Positions 22,319 through 57,000 of a stretch of 64,000 nucleotides of DNA are shown here, piece by piece. The position numbers and the translations under genes were made by a program. The notes beneath the pieces were generated by a model, which made no database searches, was not told the DNA's origin, and was given only the letters and a program-made list of their open reading frames with translations. The DNA comes from Paragordius varius (taxonomy: Eukaryota > Animalia > Nematomorpha). Numbering within the stretch: the first letter of the stretch is position 1; each line of letters starts with the position of its first letter. Location: contig OZ176056.1 in assembly GCA_964247055.1 (NCBI GenBank), forward strand, positions 1,798,001 through 1,862,000, in the 5' to 3' direction.

Positions 22319-22320
22319 AA

Positions 22321-31300: not shown

Positions 31301-34300
31301 TCAGTAACAAGATAGACGGTGTTTTAGTTGTTAACAAGATGAGAATTGATTGAAAACAGATTTTGCCAGACGGTTTATTGGATTTGGCTAACTTGAGTTT
31401 ACTGTAAAGGACTAAACAGATTAACTTTTATTTGTACATTCACTCATCACCGAAGCCCCAATTCAGTAACAAGATAGACGGTGTTTTGGTTCTTAAGGAG
31501 TTGAGAATTGATTGAAAACATATTTTGCCGGACGGTTTATTGTAAAGACTTGGCTAACTTGAGTTTACTGTAAAGGACTAAACAGATTAAAGTATTGTGT
31601 ACATCCACTCATCACCGAAGCCGCCATTCAGTAACAAGATAGACGGTGTTTTGGTTGTTAACGAGTTGAGAATTGATTGAAAACAGATTTTGCCGGACGG
31701 TTTATTGTAAAGACTTGGCTAACCTGAGTTTACTGTAAAGGACTAAACAGATTAAAGTATTATTGTGTACATCCACTCATCACCGAAGCCGCCATTCAGT
31801 AACAAGATAGATGGTGTTTTGGTTGTTAACGAGTTGAGAATTGATTGAAAACAGATTTTGCCGGACGGTTTATTGTAAGACTTGGCTAACTTTAGTTTAC
31901 TGTAAAGGACTAAACAGATTAAAGTATTATTGTGGACATCCACTCATCACCGAAGCCCCAATTCAGTAACAAGATAGACGGTGTTTTAGTTGTTAACAAG
32001 ATGAGAATTGATTGAAAACAGATTTTGCCGGACGGTTTATTGTAAGATTTGGCTAACTTGAGTTTACTGTAAAGGACTAAACACATTAAAGTATCATTGT
32101 GGACATCCACTCATCACCGAAGCCCCAATTCAGTAACAAGATAGACGGTGTTTTAGTTGTTAACAAGTTGAGAATTGATTGACAGATTTTGCCGGACGGT
32201 TTATTGTAAGATTTGGCTAACTTGAGTTTACTGTAAAGGACTAAACAGATTAAAGTATTATTGTGGACATCCACTCATCACCGAAGCCCCAATTCAGTAA
32301 CAAGATAGATGGTGTTTTGGTTGTTAACGTGATGAGAATTGATTGAAAACAGATTTTGACGGACGGTTTATTGTAAGACTTGGCTAACTTGAGTTTACTG
32401 TAAAGGACTAAACAGATTAAAGTATTATTGTGGACATCCACTCATCACCGAAGCCCCAATTCAGTAACAAGATAGATGGTGTTTTAGTTGTTAACGAGTT
32501 GAGAATTGATTAAAAACAGATTTCGCCGGACAGTTTATTGTAAGAATTAGCTAACTTGGGTTTACTGTAAAGGACTAAACAGATTAAGTTATTTTGTGCA
32601 TCCACTCATCACCGAAGCCCCAATTCAGTAACAAGATAGACGGTGTTTTGGTTGTTAACGAGTTGAGAATTGATTGAAAACAGATTTTGCCAGACGGTTT
32701 ATTGGATTTGGCTAACTTGAGTTTACTGTAAAGGACTAAACAGATTAACTTTTATTTGTACATTCACTCATCACCGAAGCCCCAATTCAGTAACAAGATA
32801 GACGGTGTTTTGGTTCTTAAGGAGTTGAGAATTGATTGAAAACATATTTTGCCGGACGGTTTATTGTAAAGACTTGGCTTACTTGAGTTTACTGTAAAGG
32901 ACTAAACAGATTAAAGTATTCTGTACATCCACTCATCACCGAAGCCGCCATTCAGTAACAAGATAGATGGTGTTTTGGTTGTTAACGAGTTGAGAATTGA
33001 TTGAAAACAGATTTTGCCGGACGGTTTATTGTAAGATTTGGCTAACTTGAGTTTACTGTAAAGGACTAAACAGATTAAAGTATTATTGTGTACATCCACT
33101 CATCACCGAAGCCCCAATTCAGTAACAAGATAGACGATGTTTTGGTTGTTAACGAGTTGAGAATTGATCGAAAACAGATTTTGCCGGACGGTTTATTGTA
33201 AGATTTGGCTAACTTGAGTTTACTGTAAAGGACTAAACAGATTAAGTTATTTTGTGCATCCACTCATCACCGAAGCCCCAAATCAGTAACAAGATAGATG
33301 GTGTTTTAGTTGTTAACGAGTTGAGAATTGATTGAAAACAGATTTTGCCGGACGGTTGATTGTAAGACTTGGCTAACTTGAGTTTTTTGTAAAGGACTAA
33401 ACAGATTAAAGTATTATTGTGTACATCCACTCATCACCGAAGCCCCAATTCAGTAACAAGATAGACGGTGTTTTGGTTGTTAACGAGTTGAGAATTGATT
33501 GAAAACAGATTTTGCCGGACGGTTTATTGTAAAGACTTGGCTAACTTGAGTTTACTGTAAAGAACTAAACAGATTAAAGTATTATTGTGTACATCCACTC
33601 ATCACCGAAGCCGCCATTCAGTAACAAGATAGATGGTGTTTTGGTTGTTAACGAGTTGAGAATTGATTGAAAACAGATTTTGCCGGACGGTTTATTGTAA
33701 GACTTGGCTAACTTTAGTTTACTGTAAAGGACTAAACAGATTAAAGTATTATTGTGGACATCCACTCATCACCGAAGCCCCAATTCAGTAACAAGATAGA
33801 CGGTGTTTTAGTTGTTAACAAGATGAGAATTGATTGAAAACAGATTTTGCCAGACGGTTTATTGGATTTGGCTAACTTGAGTTTACTGTAAAGGACTAAA
33901 CAGATTAACTTTTATTTGTACATTCACTCATCACCGAAGCCCCAATTCAGTAACAAGATAGACGGTGTTTTGGTTCTTAAGGAGTTGAGAATTGATTGAA
34001 AACATATTTTGCCGGACGGTTTATTGTAAAGACTTGGCTAACTTGAGTTTACTGTAAAGGACTAAACAGATTAAAGTATTGTGTACATCCACTCATCACC
34101 GAAGCCGCCATTCAGTAACAAGATAGATGGTGTTTTGGTTGTTAACGTGATGAGAATTGATTGAAAACAGATTTTGACGGACGGTTTATTGTAAGACTTG
34201 GCTAACTTGAGTTTACTGTAAAGGACTAAACAGATTAAAGTATTATTGTGTACATCCACTCATCACCGAAGCCCCAATTCAGTAACAAGATAGATGGTGT

Positions 34301-37300
34301 TTTGGTTGTTAACGAGTTGAGAATTGATTGAAAACAGATTTTGCCGGACGGTTTATTGTAAGATTTGGCTAACTTGAGTTTACTGTAAAGGACTAAACAG
34401 ATTAAAGTATTATTGTGTACATCCACTCATCACCGAAGCCCCAATTCAGTAACAAGATAGACGGTGTTTTGGTTCTTAAGGAGTTGAGAATTGATTGAAA
34501 ACATATTTTGCCGGACGGTTTATTGTAAAGACTTGACTAACTTGAGTTTACTGTAAAGGACTAAACAGATTAAGTTATTTTGTGCATCCACTCATCACCG
34601 AAGCCCCAAATCAGTAACAAGATAGATGGTGTTTTAGTTGTTAACGAGTTGAGAATTGATTGAAAACAGATTTTGCCGGACGGTTGATTGTAAGACTTGG
34701 CTAACTTGAGTTTTTTGTAAAGGACTAAACAGATTAAAGTATTATTGTGTACATCCACTCATCACCGAAGCCCCAATTCAGTAACAAGATAGACGGTGTT
34801 TTGGTTGTTAACGAGTTGAGAATTGATTGAAAACAGATTTTGCCGGACGGTTTATTGTAAAGACTTGGCTAACTTGAGTTTACTGTAAAGAACTAAACAG
34901 ATTAAAGTATTATTGTGTACATCCACTCATCACCGAAGCCGCCATTCAGTAACAAGATAGATGGTGTTTTGGTTGTTAACGAGTTGAGAATTGATTGAAA
35001 ACAGATTTTGCCGGACGGTTTATTGTAAGACTTGGCTAACTTTAGTTTACTGTAAAGGACTAAACAGATTAAAGTATTATTGTGGACATCCACTCATCAC
35101 CGAAGCCCCAATTCAGTAACAAGATAGACGGTGTTTTAGTTGTTAACAAGATGAGAATTGATTGAAAACAGATTTTGCCAGACGGTTTATTGGATTTGGC
35201 TAACTTGAGTTTACTGTAAAGGACTAAACAGATTAACTTTTATTTGTACATTCACTCATCACCGAAGCCCCAATTCAGTAACAAGATAGACGGTGTTTTG
35301 GTTCTTAAGGAGTTGAGAATTGATTGAAAACATATTTTGCCGGACGGTTTATTGTAAAGACTTGGCTAACTTGAGTTTACTGTAAAGGACTAAACAGATT
35401 AAAGTATTGTGTACATCCACTCATCACCGAAGCCGCCATTCAGTAACAAGATAGATGGTGTTTTGGTTGTTAACGTGATGAGAATTGATTGAAAACAGAT
35501 TTTGACGGACGGTTTATTGTAAGACTTGGCTAACTTGAGTTTACTGTAAAGGACTAAACAGATTAAAGTATTATTGTGTACATCCACTCATCACCGAAGC
35601 CCCAATTCAGTAACAAGATAGATGGTGTTTTGGTTGTTAACGAGTTGAGAATTGATTGAAAACAGATTTTGCCGGACGGTTTATTGTAAGATTTGGCTAA
35701 CTTGAGTTTACTGTAAAGGACTAAACAGATTAAAGTATTATTGTGTACATCCACTCATCACCGAAGCCCCAATTCAGTAACAAGATAGACGGTGTTTTGG
35801 TTCTTAAGGAGTTGAGAATTGATTGAAAACATATTTTGCCGGACGGTTTATTGTAAAGACTTGACTAACTTGAGTTTACTGTAAAGGACTAAACAGATTA
35901 AGTTATTTTGTGCATCCACTCATCACCGAAGCCCCAAATCAGTAACAAGATAGATGGTGTTTTAGTTGTTAACGAGTTGAGAATTGATTGAAACAGATTT
36001 TGCCGGACGGTTGATTGTAAGACTTGGCTAACTTGAGTTTTTTGTAAAGGACTAAACAGATTAAAGTATTATTGTGTACATCCACTCATCACCGAAGCCC
36101 CAATTCAGTAACAAGATAGACGGTGTTTTGGTTGTTAACGAGTTGAGAATTGATTGAAAACAGATTTTGCCGGACGGTTTATTGTAAAGACTTGGCTAAC
36201 TGGAGTTTACTGTAAAGGACTAAACAGATTAAAGTATTATTGTGTACATCCACTCATCACCGAAGCCGCCATTCAGTAACAAGATAGATGGTGTTTTGGT
36301 TGTTAACGAATTGAGAATTGATTGAAAACAGATTTTGCCGGACGGTTTATTGTAAGACTTGGCTAACTTGAGTTTACTGTAAAGGACTAAACAGATCAAA
36401 GTATTAATGTGTACATCCACTCATCACCGAAGCCCCAATTCAGTAACAAGATAGATGGTGTTTTAGTTGTTAACAAGTTGAGAATTGATTGAAAACAGAT
36501 TTTGCCGGACGGTTTATTGTAAGACTTGGCTAACTTTAGTTTACTGTAAAGGACTAAACAGATTAAAGTATTATTGTGGACATCCACTCATCACCGAAGC
36601 CCCAATTCAGTAACAAGATAGACGGTGTTTTAGTTGTTAACAAGATGAGAATTGATTGAAAACAGATTTTGCCAGACGGTTTATTGGATTTGGCTAACTT
36701 GAGTTTACTGTAAAGGACTAAACAGATTAACTTTTATTTGTACATTCACTCATCACCGAAGCCCCAATTCAGTAACAAGATAGACGGTGTTTTGGTTCTT
36801 AAGGAGTTGAGAATTGATTGAAAACATATTTTGCCGGACGGTTTATTGTAAAGACTTGGCTAACTTGAGTTTACTGTAAAGGACTAAACAGATTAAAGTA
36901 TTGTGTACATCCACTCATCACCGAAGCCGCCATTCAGTAACAAGATAGATGGTGTTTTGGTTGTTAACGTGATGAGAATTGATTGAAAACAGATTTTGAC
37001 GGACGGTTTATTGTAAGACTTGGCTAACTTGAGTTTACTGTAAAGGACTAAACAGATTAAAGTATTATTGTGTACATCCACTCATCACCGAAGCCCCAAT
37101 TCAGTAACAAGATAGATGGTGTTTTGGTTGTTAACGAGTTGAGAATTGATTGAAAACAGATTTTGCCGGACGGTTTATTGTAAGATTTGGCTAACTTGAG
37201 TTTACTGTAAAGGACTAAACAGATTAAAGTATTATTGTGTACATCCACTCATCACCGAAGCCCCAATTCAGTAACAAGATAGACGGTGTTTTGGTTCTTA

Positions 37301-38916
37301 AGGAGTTGAGAATTGATTGAAAACATATTTTGCCGGACGGTTTATTGTAAAGACTTGACTAACTTGAGTTTACTGTAAAGGACTAAACAGATTAAGTTAT
37401 TTTGTGCATCCACTCATCACCGAAGCCCCAAATCAGTAACAAGATAGATGGTGTTTTAGTTGTTAACGAGTTGAGAATTGATTGAAACAGATTTTGCCGG
37501 ACGGTTGATTGTAAGACTTGGCTAACTTGAGTTTTTTGTAAAGGACTAAACAGATTAAAGTATTATTGTGTACATCCACTCATCACCGAAGCCCCAATTC
37601 AGTAACAAGATAGACGGTGTTTTGGTTGTTAACGAGTTGAGAATTGATTGAAAACAGATTTTGCCGGACGGTTTATTGTAAAGACTTGGCTAACTTGAGT
37701 TTACTGTAAAGGACTAAACAGATTAAAGTATTATTGTGTACATCCACTCATCACCGAAGCCGCCATTCAGTAACAAGATAGATGGTGTTTTTGTTGTTAA
37801 CGAGTTGAGAATTGATTGAAAACAGATTTTGCCGGACGGTTTATTGTAAGACTTGGCTAACTTGAGTTTACTGTAAAGGACTAAACAGATCAAAGTATTA
37901 ATGTGTACATCCACTCATCACCGAAGCCCCAATTCAGTAACAAGATAGATGGTGTTTTAGTTGTTAACAAGTTGAGAATTGATTGAAAACAGATTTTGCC
38001 GGACGGTTTATTGTAAGATTTGGCTAACTTGAGTTTACTGTAAAGGACTAAACAGATTAAAGTATTATTGTGGAAATCCACTCATCACCGAAGCCCCAAT
38101 TCAGTAACAAGATAGATGGTGTTTTAGTTGTTAACGAGTTGAGAATTGATTAAAAACAGATTTCGCCGGACAGTTTATTGTAAGAATTAGCTAACTTGGG
38201 TTTACTGTAAAGGACTAAACAGATTAAGTTATTTTGTGCATCCACTCATCACCGAAGCCCCAATTCAGTAACAAGATAGACGGTGTTTTGGTTGTTAACG
38301 AGTTGAGAATTGATTGAAAACAGATTTTGCCAGACGGTTTATTGGATTTGGCTAACTTGAGTTTACTGTAAAGGACTAAACAGATTAACTTTTATTTGTA
38401 CATTCACTCATCACCGAAGCCCCAATTCAGTAACAAGATAGACGGTGTTTTGGTTCTTAAGGAGTTGAGAATTGATTGAAAACATATTTTGCCTGACGGT
38501 TTATTGTAAAGACTTGGCTAACTTGAGTTTACTGTAAAGGACTAAACAGATTAAAGTATTGTGTACATCCACTCATCACCGAAGCCGCCATTCAGTAACA
38601 AGATAGATGGTGTTTTGGTTGTTAACGAGTTGAGAATTGATTGAAAACAGATTTTGCCGGACGGTTTATTGTAAGATTTGGCTAACTTGAGTTTACTGTA
38701 AAGGACTAAACAGATTAAAGTATTATTGTGTACATCCACTCATCACCGAAGCCCCAATTCAGTAACCAGATAGACGATGTTTTGGTTGTTAACGAGTTGA
38801 GAATTGATTGAAAACAATTTTGCCGGACGATTTATTGTAAAGACTTGGCTAACTTGAGTTTATTGTAAAGGCCTAAAAGATTAAAGTATTATTGTGTACA
38901 TCCACTCATTACCGAA
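22321..38916. repeat. ~167-bp satellite array 1 (~100 monomers) with higher-order repeats
   Basis: Head-to-tail monomer CATCCACTCATCACCGAAGCCCCAATTCAGTAACAAGATAG...GGACTAAACAGATTAAAGTATTATTGTGTA (164-168 bp). Diagnostic variants recur at 2322, 4143, 1328 and 1494 bp. Confidence 0.98.
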
Positions 38917-39369
38917 CCCACCGATTTTCAAAACAAGAGAAGGTTGTAGGTTTTATGTATTCTATTTGTGTGTTATTATTTAAAAAACATTAACTTTAAT
39001 AAAATGATTGTTGCTTAAATTATATATGCTCATGTTTTAAGCATTTTGTACAATAACGAGAAAAAGCTATTTCACAAATATTAATATTACAAACACAACA
39101 TGGAAAAATTGAAAAATATTTTTTTAAAAGACTACTCTACTTATTCATAAATTATGATTCCCATAATTATAAAAATAAGCTAAACCAATTTACATCTCTA
39201 ATCCCCATTTCACAACCCAAAGAGTTAAATAAAAAAAACAAAAAAAAGAAATGGTTATTTTTAATTTTTACTTATTGTCTGTGTAATTCAAATTACTGTA
39301 AGTTTGATTATACACATTTTAAAAATGTGAAAATGTAAATTAATCATTTTAAACTACCGAAAATGTTCA

Positions 39370-40480: not shown

Positions 40481-43400
40481 GACCTTTTGAAGTAGTGTTA
40501 CTTACAACCAAATGCCCCTTAAAATATCTCAAAAATATTTTTAGCGTCAGGCTAAATTTAATGATGTGCAGTGTAAGCCTCTTAGGCACATGATAAAGCA
40601 AATAGGTAAAAAATCCCCATAAACTTTTCGGTGACTTTTTTTCCATTAATTTTTAACACTGTGAATACAAAGGCAAATAAATGTGTATTATAATTAAAAT
40701 CGGATTACAAAGATATTTATGATATTCAAATATCAGCGCTTCAATTGGAGTTATCCGTTTGGATTATAAAAGTTAACTATAAAAATTATAAGTTTTTTAT
40801 CTAGAAGAAATATCAAATAATTTTTAGCGTAACCGATCTCAGAACAGTATGTATCCTAAAAACTCTGGGCTAGAAAACCACCCTAAACCTGCCATCTCGT
40901 ACAGAAAATGTAATAAAATGTTAACCATTAATGGAGTGACTTGTTGGTATTAAGTATGAAATAAGTGTTTTCTATATTTTAAAAAACTAATTTTTAAGAT
41001 TTAACACTTTTCTAAAATTCTAAATTATTTTTTATAGTATATGATTATGGCTTACAAAAATGTTTTCATCTACATGCATAAAATGTAAGAAATGTTTATT
41101 TACTGTGGTAACATTCAAAAAACAGCGGTATTTTATCAGGGAATATTGTTTCAACAAATAAAAAAAATAAAAGGGGATTTAAATAGCTAAACTAAAATTA
41201 TGTCATATAGGCATTTATAAATAATTTATTTCAAACGTAAAAACAATCTTTTCCAGTTTTTGCCAATCGGGTAGATGTATATGTAGAAATGTTTTTTTAA
41301 ACATAAATTTTCATAAGGTTTTGTGAGCAAATTTTTGCCAATCATGATTTTCCGAATATTTCGCGGGGCACACGTGAGGTCTTGGAGGGTTGTTCGTTGG
41401 ACAACCTTACCTTAAATCAATTATTTGCGATGCATGTTATGTGCCATCTCGAAAAGTATTTATAACCATTTATTTTTTAATACCAATGCAGTTTCTGTAT
41501 TTTACAGGTTATATCTAATATTAACTTACGGTAACTTCAAACGATCGTCAATTTAAGAAATCTAAACACGTATCAAATATATTTATTGGATAAATAACTT
41601 AGTGAATTTTGCTACAATATATAATCTATAATAATTCATATGGAAAATCTTTCAAAAATATTATATATGACAAATAAATTATTCCGGCTTTAGATTTCTA
41701 ATGGCTTGTTCCAAAACTTCTAAAATTAGGAATTATATATACAGTATGATAAAATATATATTGATAGTGTTTAATACTGTATGTTATAGTTTATTGTTAT
41801 CTATATATACCTTTTGATATATCAGGATCCTCTAAACCTAATGCATCTAGGATTATCATAAAAAATAGTTTATTTGGCCAAAGTCATATTTATATTAACT
41901 ATTGAATATAGTGAATAAAAAATAGATAATGTTCTGGATTTATAATTAATATCACTATTTTTTTATCATAGGAAATAATTTCAAAAACACTGTCAATTTA
42001 TACACGGTTTAAAATTTTCTATTCCTAATTATATTTAGTGATATTGACATTATGTATAACAGGATTATCAATTTGCTTATATTACAACTGATAGAATAAA
42101 TTAGTAAAAATAATTTTTTTTTATAAACAATTTATTACTTTCAACTCCTACATCTGGAATCATGGCACCTTAATTAATATAAAAATAAAGTTATAATGCC
42201 AATTTTAATTTACAATATTTTAATAGAAAAAAATTATATAATTAATTAAGTAATTTGTCATATTATCTTAAATTTTTTTTAGATTTTATTTAACAATTAA
42301 TAATAATTATATTAAAATTATTTACTTTCATTTGCTTTGTCGATTAAATCTAATTTAAGGTAACATAATTATGAAAAAATGCCCGCTATATATAAGGATC
42401 CTTTGTTGTTAAATGGATAAAAATTTGTTGCTTTTTATAAATTAAAACCAAATTTTTAAAGTATTTTTTATTTAACCCAATTAATTTTTTTTGTTTTAAT
42501 AAAAAATTTTGTGGATGTTCTTTCAAATTAAAACTAAAAATATCCCTATATTGTGATTAACTTTTAATACAGTAAAAATTGAATTATACAGACTAAATAT
42601 AATTTTAAAATACAACCATACTTTTTATACCTTTATTTTTCTTATATAAAATATTTACTAACCACTTTAAAATATAAAATTGATTGTTTTTCCAATATTC
42701 ATCAGATGACTTAAAAATAAGATTTAATAGTATGGTTGTCTTTTAGAAAAAATATCTACGTTTTGTCCGTGTAATTCCAATTTTTACTTTAATTAATAAA
42801 CCGATAAATAATAAAATGCTATAAAAAATTAATTAAATTATTATAAATTTATTTTAATCCTAAATAAATTTTTTTTGGGAAGTTGTTGCGTTTGTTAAAA
42901 AGATAATCTTTATGTCACCTTGAATAGTGTCCATCATATCTATATAAATATTGTTTAAAGCCAAAAATATTATTTTTATATATTAAAGTCTGCAATAAAA
43001 TTAGACATGCAAAAAATATACTGCTAATGCGCTCTTTCAACGCTAAATTTAATATATATAATTTATTGATTTGTGAAATTTTTCAATTTTTAGTATTATA
43101 AAGCATACATTTTATGGATATTTTCATGCCATCTATGAAATAGATTACATAAATATTGAATTAACAAAACACAAAAAAGGTAATCTAACTTCATCTTTAA
43201 AGAGTACTTGAAAAGTACAAGACTGTCATTTTTTTTCAAAATATTTAACAATTTTAATCCTATATGTGCGGTTGGAAAATCAGCGTGTCTCTGAAACCTA
43301 AATGGCTTAAATAAATATATTTTAAAAACCGGCAGATTTAATAATTTTTCGAATTTATTGTTATTACTAATTTAGGTGATTTTAAACTAATGTCGTCAAT

Positions 43401-46400
43401 TAATACACAATATTTATTTTAAGCATATTTCATATAATTTATTTAATTTTTTATCACAAAATTTATCCCAATGTGAGATCTTAAATTAATCTTTACTATA
43501 TTTATTTTATTAAACCAAGTCACATTTAACTATTTGAAAAAAATTACCAATGTGTGCCCGATCTATCCGAAATGTAATGATTTAATTAAAATTTTATAAA
43601 TTATATTGCCATAAAAATTACTTATATTTTCTGGACCTAATCACGAATTAAATATTTTAAAATATAATTTTTATAATGAAAACTATATAATAAATATATC
43701 ACTAATATTTCGCGTTTCCTCCAAAAAGTTTTTTGATTCTAATATATATATATATATATATATGGATAATTTTAATTAAGATTTAAAAAATAAAAATGCT
43801 ACAAAATAAACATAAAAATCATAGAATTAAGATTGGACCCTAAAATGTATTGAAGAGTATATTTAATACAAAGCTATATTGATTTAAAAATAAAAGGTCA
43901 TTGAGTTATAAAAATCGGTATATATGCCAAATAATTAAAAATTTTATGGTATTTAAAACTTTGTTAGAGTTTTCAGTAGTTCTTGGGAAAATACAACAAA
44001 CATATAATCAAAAAAACTTTTTCAAGTTATTCCGTCTTAAATCACATGATTTTATAAACCATTTTTTTAACCAAACGCAACATTTTCTATCCAAACGAAA
44101 TAAAAAAGTTTCTTTTAGCTGAAAAAATGTTGCGATGAATGAATGTTGCTTTTGATTGAAAATGGTATAATCATAATTAAACGGGCTTTTTGAAAATTCA
44201 AATTAAATTAAAAAAAAATCAAAATATATCAGCTGCCATAAAGTAATTTTAAAAGCCTTATTGGAATCTTTATAAATTATTATAAGTCATACATTTAGAT
44301 ATAAAACATAAAATTTAAGCATTTTAGATTTTTAAGTTTTGAAGATTTTTATATTACAAATATGGTAAAAGTTTTTAACGTTCTACATTTTAGATAAAAG
44401 AGTTGAAACACAATTTATTTTTCTTGATTCACTATTATTCTTTTAGGGTATTGGCCGCTAAAAAGAATTTAAGGGAATTTGAAGAACAATCGCAGTGGTA
44501 TTTCTTAAAAATTTTAACGAGCCGTAAAAGAGCTTTTAGGGCTGCGGTTTAAATTAAATTATTAGCTTTATACAAAAACCCAAGTCTCTTAAAAGCGTAC
44601 AACCGGTATATCACAAACTACGCCAATTAAATAGAGTGGAAAAATATGAAGACTACTGACCCGATTTATTTAAATTAGCCAGCAATATAATGACCACATA
44701 GGCAAGTTTTTAGTAACACTAAGTGTTTAAACAAAATTTCTTTATAAATTATATATTTGATTTTACAAATACTTTTAGCTCATATCAAAAATTTTTTAAG
44801 AATGTGAAAGAATAAATTATACAATAACTTCACACTTTTTATATCATCATTCTTCCAATAAATTTTAATTAATAACAGTTGAATTTAGGTTTATATTTTA
44901 TAAAAAGTATTTTTTTGAAGAGTCAGTAACCATTTAAGAGATCGGTTCCAATGTTAAAAACCGGTATTACAAAATAACCATAAGTTATACTATAGCCAGA
45001 TTTTCCGAATTTTAAGAGATATGCTGTTAATTTAAATTTTTTTCCAACCCGATTGTGGTTATAACCGAGCAGAAACCATTCTGATTTTGGTTCCACCTTT
45101 TTCGGTCTGGTTCAAAGCGCTCGCAGTTTTTTATGTTTTGTTAAAATTTTAATTTTTTCTCCATGTTAAAATTTTATATAGATTTTAAAACTAGCTAATA
45201 TCACCTTCCAAAAGATTAGATCCTTCTGCAAATTTAAATTTAAAAAAAATCATAACATAAATACATTTCATTTATCAATTAATAACTAAATACCTGTATT
45301 TAAATTCTCGACATCTAAAATATATCGTTATAATTAAAATCAAAACGATATATTAATATTTGCAAAAATGGTTTATAAAAATTGCCCAGTTAGCCCTAAA
45401 AGATATTCTCTTTAATATATAGGATATTGAGATTTAAAAACATACGCTCCAATATTTGTCGGCCTTTAAAATTAAAGTGAAATAAAATTCTTTTTTGAAA
45501 AAAAGTTTAGAAAGTATTATTTTTTAGGATTTTACCTTGAACGATTCTGGCATGGCTAGTTTTAAATCTTTTGCCTTATGTAATATTATAAATAGTATAC
45601 TTTGTTGAAGTTCTAATTGATATGAGAAACGAATTATAAATTGTTGGTTCAACCTTAATCGTATTTCAGTCAAATTTATCCGTTCTGAAATAAATTTTGA
45701 TAACGGTAATTTATGTGTTTTTTTAAAGTAATAAAAAGTTTTTTGGCTATCGTTTTTAGAAAAAAATATATTTTTTGTAAATAAATGAAGCTAAACTAAA
45801 AAGAATTACCTCACTTAGGTTCTTAAAGTGCTGAGTACCCAATTTTATTTTTTGAAATTTATTTTATAAATTAACCAAGATTTTATATGTAACAAAAAAT
45901 GAAGTCTAGATTACTTATATACATAAATAATTATATTTAAACAATATTTTCATTATTAGCAAAACATAATGGCTTTATTTTTTGGATTAAAATGTAAATT
46001 ATACCGCTTATATCATCGTCAACTACATCAGAGTCTAAATTTATGGAATTATATATATGTATATTTCATCAGAACTGATATCAGCAAAATTAAAATGAAG
46101 TCTTAAGAACTAATTTAATTTCGGCCTTAAATTTTGAATATCGGTCTACTGACCTCTGAGTTTATGCTTTACCCTTTAAAAAGAAAATATAAATTAGTCA
46201 AATTATATATAAAATTAATATTTCATGATTATTTTTAAACTTTTATGTGGAATATGGTTTTTTAAATTGTCATACATCCTTTTAAATGTGTCTATTTTGA
46301 TTGCATATTAAAAGGTTAAAAAATTATCAGTCTTTTTGGACATCTATTTTTTATAATAACAGTTGTTAAAATCCGTAATATAACGATAAAGAATAATTAA

Positions 46401-46610
46401 ATAGAATTAAATGAAATTATAAATAAAAATTATAAACGATATGTGAAACCCTTCGTCAATACTCTAAATCTAGGCTTACCCCTAGAGTTAATTTTCAGTT
46501 TATTTTCAAATTTTCAGTTTAATTTTCATAAATTACATTAAATTTAATTTAAATTCGTATAACCAACTGCATTTATACCAAAATTGCAAAGTTGGATATA
46601 TATACGAAAT

Positions 46611-46713
46611 CGATATGTGAAAACTCCAAGTCAAATAGTTGTGTCGTACTGATGAGTGCTAACAAGCACGAAACTAGTCTGCGATTATTATTGACGAAGG
46701 GTTTCACATATCG
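46611..46713 (+). ncRNA. Minimal type-I hammerhead ribozyme, copy 1
   Basis: Stem I GUCGUA (46643-48) / UGCGAU (46680-85); core CUGAUGA (46649-55); stem II GUGCU-AACA-AGCAC; GAAA (46670-73); palindromic stem III ACUAGU; GUC cleavage triplet ending at 46679. Distal helix CGAUAUGUGAAA / UUUCACAUAUCG. Confidence 0.9.
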
Positions 46714-47065
46714 TTTATAATTTCTATTTATAATTTCATTTAATTCTATTTAATTATTCTTTATCGTTATATTACGGATTTTAACAACTGTTATTACAAA
46801 AACATAACCAATCCGTTCATTACTATTACAATATCATCTTTATCTTATGTTTCTTATCATAAAAGAGTGCTTCTTAGTTATTAAATTGATTTCTATGAAA
46901 TCCTTAAGTAGCTATAATCTAAATCTAGGCTTACCCCTAGAGTTAATTTTCAGTTTATTTTCAAATTTTCAGTTTAATTTTCATAAATTACATTAAATTT
47001 AATTTAAATTCGTATAACCAACTGCATTTATACCAAAATTGCAAAGTTGGATATATATACGAAAT

Positions 47066-47168
47066 CGATATGTGAAAACTCCAAGTCAAATAGTTGTGTC
47101 GTACTGATGAGTGCTAACAAGCACGAAACTAGTCTGCGATTACTATTGACGAAGGGTTTCACATATCG
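47066..47168 (+). ncRNA. Minimal type-I hammerhead ribozyme, copy 2
   Basis: Identical core 455 nt downstream (CUGAUGA at 47104; predicted cleavage after 47134). The extended stem I AUAGU/ACUAU is fully Watson-Crick in this copy. Confidence 0.9.
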
Positions 47169-47583
47169 TTTATAATTTCTATTTATAATTTCATTTAATT
47201 CTATTTAATTATTCTTTATCGTTATATTACGGATTTTAACAACTGTTATTACAAAAACATAACCAATCTATTTTTTATAATTTGGTTTCATGTTATATAA
47301 ATGTGATATGAATCATACATTTCATAATTGATATAATATTTTAGGGTAAAACTTATGTGTAAAAAAACTTTGGAAGCAAAAATAATATAGGCATTATTAA
47401 TTTATTTTAATAAATTACAAACCAAATATTAATTAAATTAATACGCTTGCAAATTTTTTAACTAAAAATTTATTTTAATTAAACATAACTTTACATCCAT
47501 TATATCATATGATATTTTTATATATTTTTAAAAGCGGGCACGGCTAAGGTCATATAAACTAATAATTTTTTATAAAAATCTAC

Positions 47584-48699
47584 TTCTTTGAAGACCGGAT
47601 GGTCCAGGTTGGGGTTCTGTGGCCTCTGTTTAAAATATAATTGGAAAAAATAATATGTATATCATAAAAATATTTGCTAGTTTTTAATTAAAACCTGATG
47701 TGCTTTGTGGGATAATTTCAGATATGGTATTATCAGAACCTGAAGAAAATATATTTTTTAAATAAAAGTATATAAATCACAGCTAATTTTTCAACAATAG
47801 TATTTTCTAATTTTATTATTTATATTACCATAAAATAATGTATAAATAGATAGAACCGAATTAAAAAAAACCTTCAGTTGATGCTGGATTTACACTGGGC
47901 CCTGATAAAAATTAAATATTTGCTTTTAGTTATAAAGTATGTTTTTTTAATTTTTGAACATAAACCGCCAAAGATACTTAGGTTAGGGTATAATACAGTC
48001 AAAAAAGTAAAAAATGTTTCTAAAAATAACGGTATTTGAACAAATTTTTAAATTAAAACTGATAATACTTTGTCACCCAAAAATTGACACTAACTTGTCA
48101 TTACCAGGTTCTAATTGAGCCAATTCGCCTCCATTTTCTAGATTTTTATATATTTATTTTAAATCAACATATAAAAATTTCTAAAATAGATTTTAATTGG
48201 TTTCAGCAAATATTTCAATTAAAATTTTTTTTACAATTTGCAGTGTGTTTACTTAATGTAACATTGTAAAACCAGAAATTACAAAACAAAAAGTTATTTT
48301 TATATAAAAATATTCAATTATTTTTTATAAAAATATTTGTGTAACATAAATTGTCATTATCAATATTGGAATTAAAATTGCTTTTTTTGGTAGATTATAA
48401 TTATTTAGATAAATCACTAATACTTATCCCATAATTTATCAATTAAACTTTTTATTTTTTTAAAAAAATATAATTACCAATATTCGCAATTGTTTCAACC
48501 AATTTAGCAGCTTCACTGATTTCAACTATTTTATAATAAAATAAAATTTAGAAAAAAACCAAATAAAACAAAATTTTTGATAATATATGGTTAATTTTTA
48601 TCATAACATATAATTTTTAGGGTCATTGAATTATATACCTCCATCTACAACATTTTTATTTGTAAAAATATATTTGAGTTTTACCTGTGAGTACAGTAG
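47584..48699 (-). CDS. Run of eight symmetric phase-1 exons (15, 6, 48, 33, 42, 30, 45, 42 nt) of gene copy B
   Basis: Exons 48685-48699, 48639-48644, 48478-48525, 48105-48137, 47978-48019, 47872-47901, 47695-47739 and 47584-47625 all have AG/GT ends. They splice into an open 261-nt frame: xTVLTDGVEISEAAKLVETIANIENGGELAQLEPETFFTFLTVLYPNLRPSVNPASTEGSDNTISEIIPQSTSEATEPQPGPSGLQR. Confidence 0.8.
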
Positions 48700-51097
48700 C
48701 TAATGTTTAAAAATATGTATTTTATAATATATTTTTATATAATTTATAATATTAAAAACTATCTTTGAAGTGACCGTTTTTTTACCAAAGCAATTGGTAA
48801 AAAAATTTTAATAAAATAAAGTTGAAATTCATACAAAAATTATATTACAAGGCTAAAATTTATGTTTTTATGTTTATATTAGGTGAATAACTTATCCAAA
48901 CTATACTCGTAATTAAAGATATATTAAAATATATTTATTAATTATTAGAAAAATGTGCCAAAATTATTTTGTAGAAAAATCAGAGTTGTTATACATTCCG
49001 CCTTAAATGGCATTCACAGCACTATAGTAACGCGTTAAAAATAAGCTCATTTTCCTATTTTTATATTAGAGTTTTGGCTTTATATTATACTTTTTGACTA
49101 TTTTTAAGTATTTGGAGACCTCATAAAAGCAAAAAACAAAAAATTTATTAATATGTAATCATTAGGCTTTTAAAAAATAGCAAAGTTATATTGTTATTAT
49201 TTTACAGTTCTTGCAAATAAATCTGTTTTTTCCTTTATATCTTATCAAATTTCTTGGTAATGTTGTCGGTTATGATAAATATACAGTAAAAATTGAAATT
49301 ATACGGACAAAACCTAAAAATAAAGACGAATATTATCTTTCTAAAAGGCAACCATACTTTTTAAATCTTAATTTATTTAAATATAATTTATTGATTTGAA
49401 CTGTAAAGTATGTAATAGAGATGTATATTGTTAACACAATCAATTACATATTTACATTTTGTATGTAAATAGTTTATAAGAAAAAATTTAGATCTAAAAG
49501 AGTATGGTTGTCTCTTGAAAAAAATTATTTCTTTATGTTTTTATGTTTTGTCCGTATAATCAATTTTGACTGTATAATTTATTATTTTGAACTGTTAAGT
49601 ATGTAATAGAGATGTATATTGGATACACAATTAATTATGTATTTTATCGCTATTAAATGATTTTTATAGGATCAATTTATGGGTTAAAAATATGCTTGTC
49701 TTTTGAAATAAAAATTTTGTCAATTTTACTGTATTGTATTTATATAAGTTTAAATGACGAAACCTTAAATGCGATTCAAAAAAAATAAGTAATGACTGGA
49801 CTAAAAAAATATTTACATATTTTTACTTTATAAAATAAAAGATTCTAGGCAATAATTTTGAATCAGAGGGAGAATTAGGATCAAATATATACATTAGATA
49901 TATTCATACAAGCCAATATAATAAATTCATATCTTAAAAAGGTCAAATCAGTTAACCACTTTGTAACAAAACTTGTTCTTTATGCAAGACTATGCTTTGT
50001 GATACTATACGGACAAAACGTACAAAAAAGGATTTCTTACAAAGTCAAATATTGATTTGCCCTAATTTTTCCCCATTTTAATTTTATGTTTTTATTTAGT
50101 TTTTTAAGAATTTAAATCTCAATTTATCATTTTGTAAACGACAAAAGGCTGAGTTTTTCAATGTCAACATTTTAAGAAAGTGTTGTCTCTTATAGAAAGC
50201 CCTTCTTTGAGTTTTTCCGTTTTGTTTGTATGATTATGGTAAAATATTAATTTGAAAATAAAATTACATTTTACGTCGAAATACCCGAACTTTTATCCGG
50301 TAATATAAAAATATTTGCAGTATAAATTATATCATTATCGTTTACCTGCCACTAAAAATATAAATAATATAACTTTATAAAACATATTTTTACTGTGATA
50401 TTTTTTATAAATGGTAAATTTTAACCATATACACGTTCATTTTAACCATTAATAATAACTAGTTTGAAATATTGATGTAAAATTTAAATTTTTTTGTCCA
50501 AGATATAACATACAAACAAATTTAAAGATTTTAAAAAAATAAAATATTTACAATAAAATAACTCACCAAAAAAATATTAATAATTAATGAAATATTGGAT
50601 AAAATGTAATATAGTTTTAATTATTTCTATATTTTTTAATCTAATTTAAACGGTTAAAATTACTAAATTTTATGTAAATTATGAGAAATACCTTGTGGAG
50701 CTAGAGCACCTAAGAAGTTTATAATGCAAATATATTTATAAGACATTTACCAATTCCGATCGCTGCAACAACTAATTTATATCAATGATAAAATAAAATT
50801 AGTAATTAAATTTTTAAAACAAAACTCTTCGATATTTAAACAAAAATTTTTAAATAACTGGTGTAATTATTCTTTTTAGGCTTAAATAATGATGTAATCC
50901 TTAAAATAATGTTTTATCCAGGGGCGTATCTTGCACCGCTATCCTCCAACATTTTTGTGAATTATCAATTAAATATGAAATATAATGAATGGTAAAATAT
51001 GCCCATAAAATTTTTAAATGTTGATATTTATTTTATTCAAATTTTCTGGATATATTTTGCTAAATTGGTGAATTAGTATATATTAAGAATGCGATTA

Positions 51098-51330
51098 CAG
51101 TAATGTTCCCTTTATTTTATCAAAAATTTATTTTTTTTTCGTTAAATTGGTATAAATATTTGGTAAAGAATGGAAAAACAAGAGCTTTATGGTAATTCTT
51201 ATACCTTTTTGATGAATATGATATACTGTTAATACCATAGAGCACTTGTTTTTTCCATTTTTTAACAAATGTTTATACCCATTTAACGAAAAAAAAATAA
51301 ATTTTTAATGAAATAAAGGATACATGACTG
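51098..51330. mobile_element. Tc1/mariner-type MITE (CAGTCATGTATCC family)
   Basis: TA-CAGTAATGTTCC ... GGATACATGACTG-TA with long internal inverted arms. Empty site in copy A at ~13,405-13,415. A right-truncated relative lies at ~56,588-56,775. Confidence 0.8.
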
Positions 51331-53802
51331 TAAGTCGAAAATGCGTTCCATGAAGCCATTTGTATTAATTACCCTTTTTTTACCCATTCTTATATTATTT
51401 ATTTGTATAAATTGTGAGTCAATCAAAATAATTAATTTTATTATATCTTAAAATGCAAATTTAATGTTTTTATTTTTATTAACATTTTAACTATAATTTT
51501 TATTCAGGTAAAATGTATTGACAATAAATGCCATTAAGTCTAATTTTTGTTCAAGGTGTCTCATTTAAGATCCTAATAAATGATAAATATAAGTAGAAAT
51601 AGTATACCAGGAGAAGCAGCTAAAAGTTTTTTTCCATCAATGACAGAATCCTTTTTATATTAAATATTTTTATACTTGAGTCCGACCTTTGTAAATTGGG
51701 CTTGTTTTGTTGGGCCTTTCATACTTCTCCTAAAAATTATAACCTTGCTATAAAGTTTTATTTAATTTCAATTTTATATCACTGAATTTATTTCAATCGT
51801 GTGTCCATGATTTTCAAAATTTTATGCTACTAAAATTCTAAGCAGTGAAAAAAATCAGTATAAATCTCATAAATATAGAAAATGTAAAAGCAAATTGAGT
51901 TTTTTTTGATAATATGATGCAATATCAGCAATAATAATTTGTTGAATTTTCATTAGATTTCTCTAACTTCTTCGGACAAATACACAAATAAAGCCTGATT
52001 AATGCATTTTATATAAATACCGTTTTATTAGGGTCTTTCTTTATATTCGCAGCTAAATGGAAAATAAATAAGATTCACAATTATTATATAAAAACATCAC
52101 ATTAAAATCTTTAACCATTATACAACACGTTAAAAAATGATTCGACATTGTATTCCAAATCGGTCAAAGCACTTTCTAATTTTTCTTATTATTATCGTTA
52201 AGCTTTTTTATTTTAAATAAATGGACGCTCTTTATTTCAATCCTAACTATGAGCTTTAAAATATTGCCCAATATCTGCATTTTTCCAATATAGAACAAAT
52301 TTTTAATATTTATAAGTATCGTTGGTTAACATTGTATAAAATAATTTTTATTGTAACCAAAATAAAAACCGCTTTATTAAAAATGCGGCAATCAATTTTT
52401 TTTAATAAAAATAAGATATATACAATTGAACAAAGGCTGTTAATATACAGTATGCATTTATGTTTGCGCTTATTTCACAACACTTTAGTAGGGGGCAATT
52501 TGCCTCACAGTTAGCAGTGTATGGAAAAAAAGAAAGGACTAAATTGTTTATTCAACATTTTGTTGTTTTTTTCCATACACTAATACTGTGTTGCAATTGC
52601 CCTACTATAGTGTGAAATGAGCAGCCATTAAAATTCATACTGTAATAAAAATTTATTTCTTAATTTTCTATTGTTTTTTTAAAACATGTTCAAATACTTA
52701 AAATTTAGATAGAATAAAACCCACACGCTTTTACTTGTTTCTCCTGGCCCTGCCTAAAAAAGTATGATTAATTTTTGTAAAAGCTAAATTTATATTTTAT
52801 AGTAAAAATTGCAATTCTAAGACAAAACCTGAAAACATAAAGACCAATATTTTTTCCAAAAGCAATCATATTTTTGAAATCTAATTTATAAGTAGAATAT
52901 ATAAATTTTGTTACCAATTAACATCTTTATTTCATACTTTGCAGTTTGAAATAATGAGTTAAAATAGAAATAAAATCTCAAAAACTATAGCCGTGTTGAA
53001 AAAATATTGGTATTTATATTTTTACGTTTTGTCTGTATAATATAAATTTTTATTGTAAATATTATTATACATAACATAAAAAGTTTTATAATTACGAGAC
53101 CTGTTCATAATAATATTTATCCATCGACTGAGTTTCATTTGAATCTGAAAAAATAAAACAAATGTTACAAAAATTTTATTGACTTCGGTTACGAATTCGT
53201 CGTGTAAATATAAAAAATAACCAGTCAGTACTTAAACAATTTTAACAATATGATATCGTTTGAAGTAAAATATGAATTTGACATATGGTAAACTTAATTT
53301 TATGTCCAAATAAATATTTTTAATAATATATATGGTCATAAAATAATGAAGTTTCACTCTCTATGCCATTTAACTCTTTATATTATTAAAGCGGGAATTG
53401 CATTTATAAGCAATAAGATCGTTATTTTTTAATCGGTCAAACCAAAATTTCTTGTATATGGTGTAAATTAAACAATGAATCACTACAATACGTAGTTTAA
53501 TATCATATTATCATAAAACCAGGAGTATCCAACCCAAATGGCGTTACGGATATTTTCGACTCAAAAAATAGGCTGGCTGCAACCAAATACATATACTATA
53601 AATATTTGATCTTTTAATAAATTACAATATACATCAATTTTTAGTTTATTGTCTATCGAATAAAATAATTCAGAAAATTTGAGAATCTATATTCATCGGC
53701 ATATTTTTTGAAAATATTTTTCCAAATTTTCCCTGTGCCTCACGAATTATCACGGAAGTGTTTGACACCCCTACTTTTAACCAAATGAAAATATTGCATA
53801 TA

Positions 53803-54080
53803 CCATTTACAATTTAACTTCACTCCTGAACACTTAAATCACCCTAAAAATAAATTAGGTGTTTTCGGGCTAATATAACTCCTTATTAATATGAAATTTA
53901 TCTTATTAGCTTAGTTTATTACTTTTCAATATTATTATAATTTTAAACAAAATTTTTTTTCTTTCAAAATATAAATAAATATAAGGTTTAAATCTTAAAA
54001 TACACTTAATTTTTTTAAGGGTGAATTTGAATGTTCGAGGACTAATTTGATTTTTTAAGGGGAATTTGAATTGTAAATGG
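53803..54080. mobile_element. MITE specific to copy B
   Basis: TA-CCATTTACAATT ... AATTGTAAATGG-TA with subterminal inverted similarity. Absent at the copy A site (~17,280). Confidence 0.7.
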
Positions 54081-57000
54081 TATATAAAAGGATTGTATAT
54101 TTGATTACAAACATATTACTTATTGCAAATTCAGTAACAGACACGTTGGGTATTTTAGTGAGATTCTGCAAATTCAAAAATTTGAATTAGATAAATAATA
54201 ATGATTGCCTAATAAATATAATTATGCTAACAAAAAAGGAATATATAATAACTTGTATATTTTCTGAAATTCCTAATAATAAATATGTATAAAAATATAA
54301 AATATAAATCGATTGAAACAGCAAAACATTTAAAAATTCTCATTTTCCTTTTTAAAAATCTCTTATATTGTATGATTTAGAATCATACGATGTGCGGTTC
54401 TTTATAAAAATCGTATTTTAAAAAATATGAAATCAAGATTTGACAATGACTTTAAAAACCACCTGTATCAAAGACACTAAAACTAAAACCGAAATTAAAA
54501 TGAAACCATAAAAGTTTTTTTTTCAAAAAATATGTGGAAAAGTCAAAACAAAAAATCGATTATTCATATTTGGAAACAATTTAAAAAATAATCTAATATC
54601 AACCGTTGTGATACATATTTAAATATTTTTTTCGACAAAAGACTATATATATATACTTTGTTCAATGTCCGTTCTGGATTGATTAGTATTAGGTGAATTA
54701 TTGTCATCCGTGATCTCAATAACTAATTTACAATAAAATGTTAATCTATATGTAATATATATCAATTGACTTTTGCTAATATATCTTTGTTATAAAAAAA
54801 AATTTGTTTATATTAGTTAAGGATAAATATTAATATTCTGAAGTAATTAATAAAACAAAATTATAATCAAGTAAAAACAATATGTAATGTTTATCCTTAC
54901 CAAATACAATCTGTTTACAATATGCTATATAATTATATAAAAAAATTTATTAAACTTTGTATAGCACGGATCAATATATAAAAGCCGGTTTATTGGCTTT
55001 ATAATACAATTATTCGCAAACTTTTATCAATCTTTAAAAATATACCATTGCTCTTCAAATATTTTCTTGAAAACTTTAAATTCACCCTCAAGCATTTTAA
55101 ATAACTATAAAATGTTTTTAAATATCTTAAATTACATATATTTTAAAATAAAATCTGAATATTATTATTATATCCGGAAAAACAATGCCATTGAGGAATT
55201 ACGAATCAATTTAATAAGTTATTATGTATTTTTAAGACTTTTCGATAAAGTAAAACCCTCAAGGTAAGAGGTGTGAACTAAACTATCAAATCAATGTCAA
55301 TATTGAAAACTAATAAAACAATAATAATTTCAAATTTTTTGCATTTAATATAAAGTATAAATGGCTATTAATCAATGATAAAATGTTTGTTTTTTCATTT
55401 ACGCAAATAAGTTATTTATAAGCTTTCTACCAAATACCTAATTATAGGTTAGTTACTAATGTTAAACTACTTCTCGTTTTAATTATTTCATTGAAGTTTC
55501 AAATCGACTTTACGAATGCCTAAATACGAATGCGTTTCATCACATATAATGGATTTAGTTGTATTTGTTTAGCATTATAATATCAAATTCTATATTGTTC
55601 GCAATTTATAGAAACTCAAAATTTAGAAATTACTGCAGAGCTAAAGTCAAAAAGGGTTTTTGGTCGGATGTGAAGCAGAGACGTATTATTATAAAAACTG
55701 ACTGACTGTTTTTATATCTATTTACTAACGTTGTAAGGTGTGCGGCTAAAAAAGAAGCGAAAATTGCAAGCCTGCATGACGAATCTATACTCTAATAACT
55801 AATTAAAAGACTTTAACACGCAAAAAGGTAAGTTTTATTGTGAAAATCTAAGAATCTGTAAAATATTTTTAAAATTAATTGACATAATTTGCCATTTAAA
55901 GCAGTCAAAAAGGTTTAAAGGCACAAAATGGTGCAAATTACCTGTCGTTTGACTTAGTAGAATACATGCTATAAAATTATAAATTAATGTTCGCATAATA
56001 GGAATCATCATCATCGGAATATTTAATAAAATATTTTTTAAAAAAATATTTGGATATTCACGTAAAAAAACATTTTATAAGGTCAGTTATCTATAGTACA
56101 AGGTACGCTCCAGCTACAATGTAATATATAAACAAGATAACACACATTCTTTCTTAATAGTTATAACAGCCTAAGCAAAACAAAGTTAAATTACGTTTAG
56201 GATTAAAAATTATTTTGCATAAATACTTAGTGAACAATAATTTTAAAGGGATTTGTAAATCCGTGCGAATAACAAGTATTTAAGCAACAATATAAGTTTT
56301 TAAAATGAATAAATGTATAATTTGAAGAAAAAAACAACCTTTTTCACATTATTTCAGGTTAAATAAAATATATAAATACTTATTCCTGTAATATTTTAAT
56401 TTTAAATGTTACGATTATGCCATTTATTATTTAAATTTCGCTAATTATGGAACATAAATGTAAAAAGAATGGATTAACGACAACTGATTCCTTCAAAATG
56501 AAGGCAGTCAGCTCAGCTCAAAAATATCGTCAAATATTTTTAATAGAATTAAAAGCAAGACCATTACAGCCACCATATAATTAATAACAGTCATGTATCC
56601 TTTGTTTTATCAAAATTTTTTTTTTCGTTAAATGGGTATAAATATTTGGTAAAGAATGGAAAAAACAAGAGCTCTATGGTATTAACCATATAAAGAACTA
56701 ATATAGAGCTCTTGTTTTTTCCATTCTTTACCAAATATTTATGCCCATTTAACGAAAAAAATTTTTTTGATAAAATATTTTGGAATTCAAATCATATATT
56801 TAAAAATTGTTCGCATTAGTTAATAAAATTAAAAATTTTAAGAAATTGCCGGAACCAGTTAACCAATAAAACACATTCTATGTGAGAAATTTTTAAACCT
56901 TAAAAATACAATAAGATTTGGTCGTCGCATGAGATCAATTTAAAAACCAAAAGCAGATCCAGTATTCATCACATTACTATTGAAAAGCTGGACATACATA

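Follow-up and report, generated by a model that had tools for sequence, protein, structure and literature searches.

The window analysed here is a stretch of 64,000 nucleotides from the genome of the nematomorph Paragordius varius (contig OZ176056.1, positions 1,798,001 to 1,862,000 of the forward strand), and positions below are those of the window unless a unit or a locus is named. At 46358-47265 the window contains a 908-bp insertion that carries two tandem hammerhead ribozyme motifs and is bracketed by a perfect 16-bp target-site duplication. The two copies of the duplicated 16-mer, ATCTATTTTTTATAAT, form an exact pair at the edges of the element (46342-46357 and 47266-47281). Between them, an inverted 5' arm is followed by a direct arm that repeats with a period of 455 nt. 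The original prediction for this DNA had described a 16-bp duplication, an inverted piece of about 105 bp and two direct repeats of period 455, and all of these are present. In what follows, family A denotes the dispersed sequences sharing this repeat unit, and 46680-47134 (455 nt) serves as the reference for all unit positions.

Read against this unit, the insertion runs from unit position 123 down to 10 on the minus strand and then through positions 235-455, 1-455 and 1-134 on the plus strand. The inverted arm (46358-46461, minus strand, unit positions ~123 down to 10) is 104-114 nt long and has its 3' end outwards, while 9 nt separate its inner end from the cleavage site of the hammerhead. 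The interval 46348-46461 is 98% complementary to both 46689-46802 and 47144-47257, and the arm has its outermost 10 nt, save for one mismatch, in common with the duplicated 16-mer, which makes this a microhomology. The direct arm, on the plus strand, opens with a partial unit at 46459-46679 (unit positions 235-455; 99.5% identical to the unit over 221 nt by BLAST), which ends at the first hammerhead. It continues with a full unit of 455 nt bounded by the two predicted cleavage sites (46680-47134), in which no open reading frame (ORF) exceeds 49 amino acids (aa). The last partial unit (47135-47265, unit positions 1 to ~131-134; 99.3% over 134 nt) ends at the 3' terminus of the element, where the arm closes with AATC beside ATC and the final 3-4 nt constitute microhomology with the target.

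The direct repeat amounts to 1.78 units, and its two halves (46459-46813 versus 46914-47268) differ at 2 of 355 positions, one of which falls at the inversion junction; 46459-46758 and 46914-47213 are 99% identical. A private variant at unit position 79 is common to the inverted arm and to both direct units (46392, 46758 and 47213). Because the duplication is perfect, the repeats differ at only these two positions and private variants are common to all three pieces, the copy is, judged from its sequence, young. The complete unit folds at -84.8 kcal/mol (z = -4.16). The element consists of tandem non-coding units of a few hundred nucleotides, each with a type-I hammerhead, and has no long terminal repeats (LTR), no primer binding site (PBS) and no polypurine tract (PPT). 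No (TA)n target is present at the insertion site and no tail of 30-40 bp was seen at this copy.

Both hammerheads are identical 31-nt motifs on the plus strand, at 46649-46679 and 47104-47134, and these are the only two occurrences of the motif in the whole window; cleavage is predicted after C46679 and C47134, respectively. The motif is composed of CUGAUGA, a GUGCU/AGCAC stem II with loop AACA, GAAA, ACUAGU and a final C. The core residues C3-U4-G5-A6-N7-G8-A9, G12-A13-A14 and GUC are intact in both copies, and most family A members likewise keep all 13 core positions. Stem II comprises 5 bp including the G10.1-C11.1 pair, and helix I is formed from the 5' and 3' flanks, giving a type-I topology. 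Stem I pairs over 6 bp beside the core and continues, interrupted, for ~35 bp, which is visible as an inverted repeat around each motif (long hairpin 1, 46608-46716; long hairpin 2, 47063-47171; plus strand); a 126-nt hairpin at 46600-46725 folds at -38.4 kcal/mol (z = -4.73). Helix III is only the self-complementary six-base palindrome ACUAGU. The classical type-I form is not what is found here, since stem I has no closing loop able to contact loop II and there is no stable helix III. Each structural element anticipated for the two motifs, namely a complete core, a 5-bp stem II, a long interrupted stem I and a palindromic stem III of ACUAGU, was confirmed, as was their assignment to the minimal type-I hammerheads with palindromic helix III, a kind known from the pseudo-LTRs (pLTRs) of Penelope elements.

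A search with Rfam at gathering thresholds returned no RNA family match in the window; below threshold, the model Hammerhead_HH9 (RF02275) scores 25.4 bits for hammerhead 1 and 26.7 bits for hammerhead 2 (E = 8.5e-4 and 3.4e-4 for a 1-kb stretch). Covariation was examined in an alignment of 29 distinct sequences of family A and of a second family, family B. In this alignment 96.9% of the stem I/II cells are paired, compared with 18-55% in shifted registers, and five of ten pairs are compensatory. The covariation, most of which reflects one between-family contrast plus a few within-family events and not many independent events, supports the predicted hammerhead fold. In computed energies, a double-hammerhead dimer with a 6-bp intermolecular helix III reaches -25.0 kcal/mol, against -24.4 kcal/mol for two monomers and -26.8 kcal/mol for the dimer minimum, and thus lies within 1.8 kcal/mol of that minimum. 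These values agree with the dimer-dependent, slow cleavage of minimal hammerheads of the type found in Penelope-like elements (PLEs), as given in those passages of a review that cite Lunse et al. 2017 and Forster et al. 1988 (PMC6765202). With the six-base palindrome ACUAGU standing in for helix III, the minimal hammerhead probably needs a second copy, paired with it as a double hammerhead, in order to cleave.

The insertion sits in duplicated DNA. The part of the window from 41.5 to 58.3 kb is a diverged duplicate of 0-22.3 kb (67-22252 versus 41548-58329, 75-93% identity), and each segment copy is followed by an array of a 167-bp satellite (22320-38919 and 58354-64000) with 95% matches within the array. 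At the sister locus (~8099-8114) a single homologue of the duplicated 16-mer stands without any insertion, and the alignment continues across the joined flanks, in line with the earlier claim that the paralog lacks the element. The element must therefore have inserted after the segment duplication; for the host locus, the copy represents a recent insertion missing from one of two duplicated segments. Neither the ORFs, nor Pfam applied to eight of them, nor the conservation profile against the sister locus yielded a gene model or a strand at the insertion site, and conservation between the two loci is patchy, without an exon pattern. The proposed intronic site, with ribozymes in antisense orientation to the gene of the host, thus found no footing in ORFs, Pfam matches or exon-like conservation. 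A short contig from one sequencing run (X1) joins 46351 to 47290 without the element, with 12 other letters and with 21 letters on one side. This contig differs from both the reference and the sister locus and may be an empty-site allele or another paralog.

Genome-wide, family A is a dispersed family. In the 110.6-Mb assembly we obtained 136 matches to the unit, at 73-100% identity, from 411 candidate places. A generic hammerhead pattern has 203 matches in the genome, whereas its reversed control has 2. Contig depth, summed over the element, is ~100-1000x that of the flanks in each of two deep DNA runs that bear the same species label, and a run with another species label contains family A together with near-identical flanks. 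The anatomy was established on 28 distinct family-A insertions, and the arm statistics use these 28 loci plus coordinates taken from a table. Two arms are found in 23 of the 28, always minus then plus, with the 3' ends outwards and the 5' ends meeting in the middle; single-arm copies exist as well. An exact flanking repeat of 11-18 bp accompanies 19 of the 28 insertions.

The arms are read from a periodic template. Most of them (42 of 52) cross at least one cleavage site, passing seamlessly through one to three; the longest arm extends over 2.4 units (1,083 nt) without an ORF, and one copy (L006) reaches 3.4 units. What precedes unit position 1 is invariably unit position 455 and not coding sequence, and no ORF was found in any copy examined. 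A tblastn search with PLE proteins in 58 loci of families A and B found nothing apart from one PLE ORF split by a family-A insertion. Multiplicity, the lack of any ORF above 49 aa and the perfect duplication uphold the description of the insertion as a young non-coding retroelement. The split frame belongs to locus L022 (761-2776), where a family-A copy at 1098-1917 with a 13-bp duplication lies inside the endonuclease-coding part of a Penelope-like ORF; here a non-autonomous element has inserted into what may be a helper. The family-A copies of L013 and L022 have the same unrelated repeat on one flank, containing CCCCCTGTTTTGTGTTCATTAAGATT, which suggests that both are nested in another repeat family.

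The ends of the arms are not scattered over the unit. Of 52 arm 3' ends, 49 belong to unit positions 93-168, where they cluster 112-123 and 149-158 nt past the cleavage site; the junctions of family-A arms share a few bases of microhomology with the target. Among the 5' ends, 20 of 70 lie at unit positions 1-47 versus 5 at positions 409-455 (p = 0.004); positions 1-10 account for seven (p = 9e-4). A start 2-9 nt beyond the cleavage site is seen in several arms, and the inverted arm of the copy studied here starts at position 10. In ten of the 23 two-armed copies, the long arm starts between -30 and +60 nt from the priming site of the short arm, where 20% would be expected (p = 0.009). Such starts of the long arm near the short-arm priming site are expected if twin priming takes place on one RNA molecule; 5' inversion by twin priming was reportedly described for L1 elements by Ostertag and Kazazian in 2001. 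We found no description of such regularities of arm ends relative to the cleavage site in the papers cited here on PLEs and retrozymes, the hammerhead-bearing retroelements compared below.

Alongside these arms, a solo family-A fragment of ~146-153 nt at L040:406-551 covers unit positions 3-155, as if copied from the 5' end of a cleaved RNA. It lies ~0.9 kb from a diverged PLE endonuclease fragment. GIY-YIG-like fragments occur at G000 C7:7794, C3:14411901, C4:14188756 and C28:8476, those on C7 and C3 within ~8 kb of contig ends.

The same genome holds autonomous PLEs with reverse transcriptase (RT) and GIY-YIG endonuclease. Open frames of 788, 758, 727 and 893 aa are present, the 727-aa frame lying ~165 kb downstream on the same contig and the 893-aa frame on contig 10, with RVT_1 and GIY-YIG Pfam matches on relatives, and there are 59 places matching RT, belonging to several PLE families. 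Three autonomous elements, at L043:5238-8551, L044:5615-9454 and L045:5692-8209 (frames of 788, 758 and 485 aa), display head-to-head inverted arms, duplications of 12-15 bp and a 30-nt tail on one side; the L044 copy adjoins a (TA)n run. PLE family 1 has a compact pseudo-LTR of 133 nt, and each of its tails carries a U3-A8 variant motif (UUGACAAA, with a 7-bp stem and GAAA), a hammerhead variant already described for PLEs (PMC4209133). Our provisional view that the PLEs here are without hammerheads, based on negative Rfam searches (E<=1) and a negative regular expression (CUGANGA...GAAA) on the PLE loci, was given up when each family-1 tail proved to contain this variant. The same U3-A8 variant core recurs in a second motif (UUGACAA, stem GUAUGGA/UCCAUAC, GAAA) on the minus strand of L035 (~2949) and of L047 (~5685); the flanking sequence is unrelated, and the different 7-bp stem II covaries with that of the family-1 motif.

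Family B, which is also ORF-less, has a GUCC/GGAC stem II, the helix III palindrome ACGCGU and an interrupted stem I of ~30 bp. Its exact motif occurs at 43 places genome-wide (loci L048-L077) in at least two subfamilies. Its arms end ~125-187 nt after the cleavage site, and the reference copies contain inverted arms. We take its motif, with ACGCGU as helix III, to resemble the motif class of the schistosome Sm-alpha and Sj-alpha elements more than that of family A does. One family-B pair was suspected to combine hammerheads with an ORF of their own and was rejected, the adjacent ORFs being an LTR-element gag/protease and a fucosyltransferase. Among the loci inspected, canonical-core motifs (families A and B) were observed on ORF-less elements alone.

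We conclude that the insertion is probably a recent copy of a non-autonomous, Penelope-type element of the retrozyme kind, ORF-less and built of 455-nt units. Mobilisation by PLEs is favoured because the anatomy of family A matches that of the RT and GIY-YIG PLEs in the same genome. In the mechanism we propose, a transcript of more than one unit would be used in trans by a PLE reverse transcriptase/endonuclease, whose GIY-YIG domain would make staggered nicks and so give rise to the target-site duplication. Each nick would prime cDNA at a preferred template site, 112-123 or 149-158 nt downstream of the hammerhead cleavage site, where microhomology of a few bases to the target would assist, and the two cDNAs would be joined in the middle as in twin priming, leaving the inverted arm. 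The hammerhead would trim multimeric transcripts. For the copy in the window, this would imply one linear template of at least ~1,044 nt with its 5' end within 9 nt of a cleavage site and with two sites uncut or religated. A simple 455-nt monomer template does not fit the arms of this copy.

Several observations weigh against this interpretation. Neither cleavage nor a circle nor a transcript was observed; no run recorded as RNA contains the element, and none of its sampled words occurs in the listed runs presumed to be RNA. The Rfam scores lie under the 52-bit gathering threshold of HH9; this is because the helix III of the model is missing here, the alignment deleting the helix III loop. The minimum-energy fold of the monomer pairs ACUG of the core with UAGU and is not the active fold, although the failure of minimum-energy folding to return an active fold is not counted as evidence against activity. 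Within family A, the hammerhead varies only a little less than other parts of the unit do (rank 36 of 280 windows). The arm statistics rest on a partial census and not on the whole family. Eight arms start at positions 34-47, the foot of the long hairpin, and stalling of the reverse transcriptase, without cleavage, could explain part of the 5'-end enrichment. The copy in the window deviates from the family pattern as well: a gap of 111 nt separates its arms, and its 3' end, at position 134, belongs to neither cluster.

The helper poses a further difficulty. The original prediction had proposed mobilisation in trans by a Penelope RT and a search for an autonomous GIY-YIG/RT Penelope with the same pLTR. 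Intact RT and GIY-YIG ORFs do exist, and the insertions have PLE-type anatomy, but no partner with the same pLTR was found: BLAST of the unit against five 10-kb PLE loci was negative, and nhmmer with a profile of the family-A 3' region returned only the stray family-A fragment in L040. This comparison left out PLE families at 31-67% protein identity. A Smith-Waterman score of 45 between unit positions 21-108 and the 3' untranslated region of one PLE is in the top 0.2% of the genomic background; the similarity is weak and AT-rich. The autonomous PLE family that we inspected carries the different, U3-A8 variant of a hammerhead-like motif.

Of the other explanations, we regard as possible, though improbable, the classical retrozyme cycle, in which a religated 455-nt circular RNA is the template and the 1.78-unit arm is rolling-circle cDNA, with no linear multimer involved. 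The seamless passage of arms through up to three cleavage sites and the compact fold of the unit (z = -4.2) would suit such a template, and animal retrozymes are known to yield circular RNAs (PMC7229834). Circles, however, lack a 5' end, while those of the arms show an enrichment 2-47 nt downstream of the cleavage site, and the inverted arm of our copy ends 9 nt from it. Minimal PLE-type hammerheads are, besides, slow even as dimers (PMC6765202), and genomic copies of several units that are able to give linear multimers exist, such as the 3.4-unit copy.

It is somewhat less probable, in our estimate, that the hammerheads are inactive relics or structural signals and that what matters is the long hairpin, for instance in recognition or stalling of the reverse transcriptase. 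The masking of part of the core in the monomer fold and the arm starts at the hairpin foot speak for this explanation; the activity of PLE hammerheads in vivo has been called a mystery (PMC7761336), and Naiad PLEs thrive without hammerheads (PMC8557442). It is difficult to reconcile with 13 intact core positions in both copies and in most family members, with the retention of the same core by two unrelated families whose stems I and II covary, and with the seven arms that start no more than 10 nt from the cleavage site.

The copies would also be accounted for as heavily 5'-truncated remnants of an autonomous PLE whose pLTR is the 455-nt unit, which is how Cervera and de la Pena (2014) read most dispersed minimal hammerheads (PMC4209133). 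PLE insertions are usually strongly 5'-truncated and have their hammerheads in pLTRs near the 3' end (PMC8557442, PMC4209133), and several PLE families of this genome lie outside the inspected set. Against this, position 455 always precedes position 1, including in arms of up to 1,083 nt, and the only PLE coding sequence in the 58 loci of families A and B is the ORF interrupted by a family-A copy that has its own duplication. Among the matches listed, none of the 59 RT places coincides with a hammerhead apart from the L022 fragment. We therefore consider truncation quite unlikely. A foldback or MITE-like (miniature inverted-repeat) DNA transposon, or a local duplication and inversion, shares with our element the inverted terminal sequences and the target-site duplication, but is scarcely credible given unequal arms with variably truncated inner ends, outer ends internal to a periodic unit, duplications varying from 11 to 18 bp, single-arm copies, and junction microhomology that fits target-primed reverse transcription.

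Returning to the non-autonomous Penelope-type element, we may also ask what the hammerhead would contribute to it. It is conceivable, although we think it doubtful, that the hammerhead module is the cis-acting heart of a Penelope parasite. The hairpin would then position the PLE reverse transcriptase at fixed sites, 112-123 or 149-158 nt downstream of each cleavage site, for both nicks, the surplus of arm 5' ends at 2-10 nt past that site would record self-cleavage in vivo, and canonical-core hammerheads would occur only on ORF-less elements exploiting PLEs that carry the U3-A8 variant. If this were true, the PLE-associated hammerhead would acquire a testable role. The minimal hammerheads tied to PLEs continue to be described as having no known role, and for animal retrozymes direct evidence of the enzyme that mobilises them has been wanting. 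Clean young family-A insertions that match PLE anatomy constitute structural evidence that PLEs mobilise the family. The distances of arm ends from the cleavage site, moreover, offer a cheap read-out of template ends and priming sites that needs nothing but sequence and is applicable genome-wide.

The closest known systems are the ORF-less tandem hammerhead units of animals, which were named non-LTR retrozymes in 2020 (Cervera and de la Pena, PMC7229834) and for which PLEs were proposed as helpers (PMC7229834, PMC7761336); a 2026 preprint on vertebrate genomes by Li, Clavereau and Pollet argues for retrozymes being non-autonomous PLE sequences (bioRxiv 10.64898/2026.07.22.740005). Like these, family A consists of ORF-less, AT-rich tandem units with a type-I hammerhead each, has duplications of more than 4 bp, shows no LTR, PBS or PPT, and co-occurs with PLEs; PLE mobilisation and cDNAs longer than one unit, as we propose them here, are further common traits. 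However, the 455-nt unit of family A stands at the upper end of the reported range of ~150-400 nt. Its hammerhead is of the minimal PLE type without a real helix III, whereas retrozymes have the classical type-I motif with loop-loop contacts, and its copies are dispersed insertions of one to three units with an inverted arm instead of long tandem arrays. Retrozymes accumulate circular RNA (PMC7229834), while family A is known here from DNA alone.

Minimal hammerheads with a palindromic helix III were reported in 2014 from PLE pLTRs, as dispersed single motifs and as opposite-strand pairs (PMC4209133; reviewed in PMC6765202). Family A shares with them the type-I topology, the palindromic mini helix III, an expected dependence of cleavage on dimers, and the occurrence as tandem motifs or nearby opposite-strand pairs, most of them dispersed in non-coding DNA. 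Unlike the PLE motifs, its repeats have no RT/GIY-YIG ORF between or beside them in any copy examined, and the inspected autonomous PLE family of this genome has a U3-A8 variant motif within a 133-nt pLTR that is unrelated to the family A unit. In canonical endonuclease-containing (EN+) PLEs, a partial tandem, the pseudo-LTR, with an adjacent inverted 5'-truncated copy is the standard arrangement (Craig et al. 2021, PMC8557442). The partial tandem, the inverted 5'-truncated copy, the strong 5' truncation and the variable duplications recur in family A, which differs in being non-coding and, at the present copy, in having neither a 30-40-bp tail nor a (TA)n target; the PLE family 1 of the same genome does have a tail, of 30 nt, as described for PLEs (PMC8557442).

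The schistosome elements Sm-alpha and Sj-alpha are presented as SINE-like (resembling short interspersed elements) with hammerheads in the part of the review that cites Ferbeyre 1998 and Laha 2000 (PMC6765202). By that description, and likened by description only, they resemble family A as short, non-coding, dispersed or tandem retroposon-like repeats with a type-I hammerhead. As in L1 twin priming, an inverted 5' segment is linked in family A to a direct 3' one, and a small gap or overlap occurs where the two meet. In L1 the second priming is random, whereas in family A it would take place at the same preferred zone downstream of the hammerhead in another unit, and the enzyme in our proposal is a PLE RT/GIY-YIG protein. 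Taken together, an element of this kind is already known; what differs here is the placement of a minimal motif of the PLE type on a periodic unit of 455 nt that is purely non-coding and, at the level of sequence comparison, the lack of detectable homology between this unit and the inspected PLE pLTR. Family A is mainly of value as a clean data set on how PLE enzymes copy hammerhead-bearing templates.

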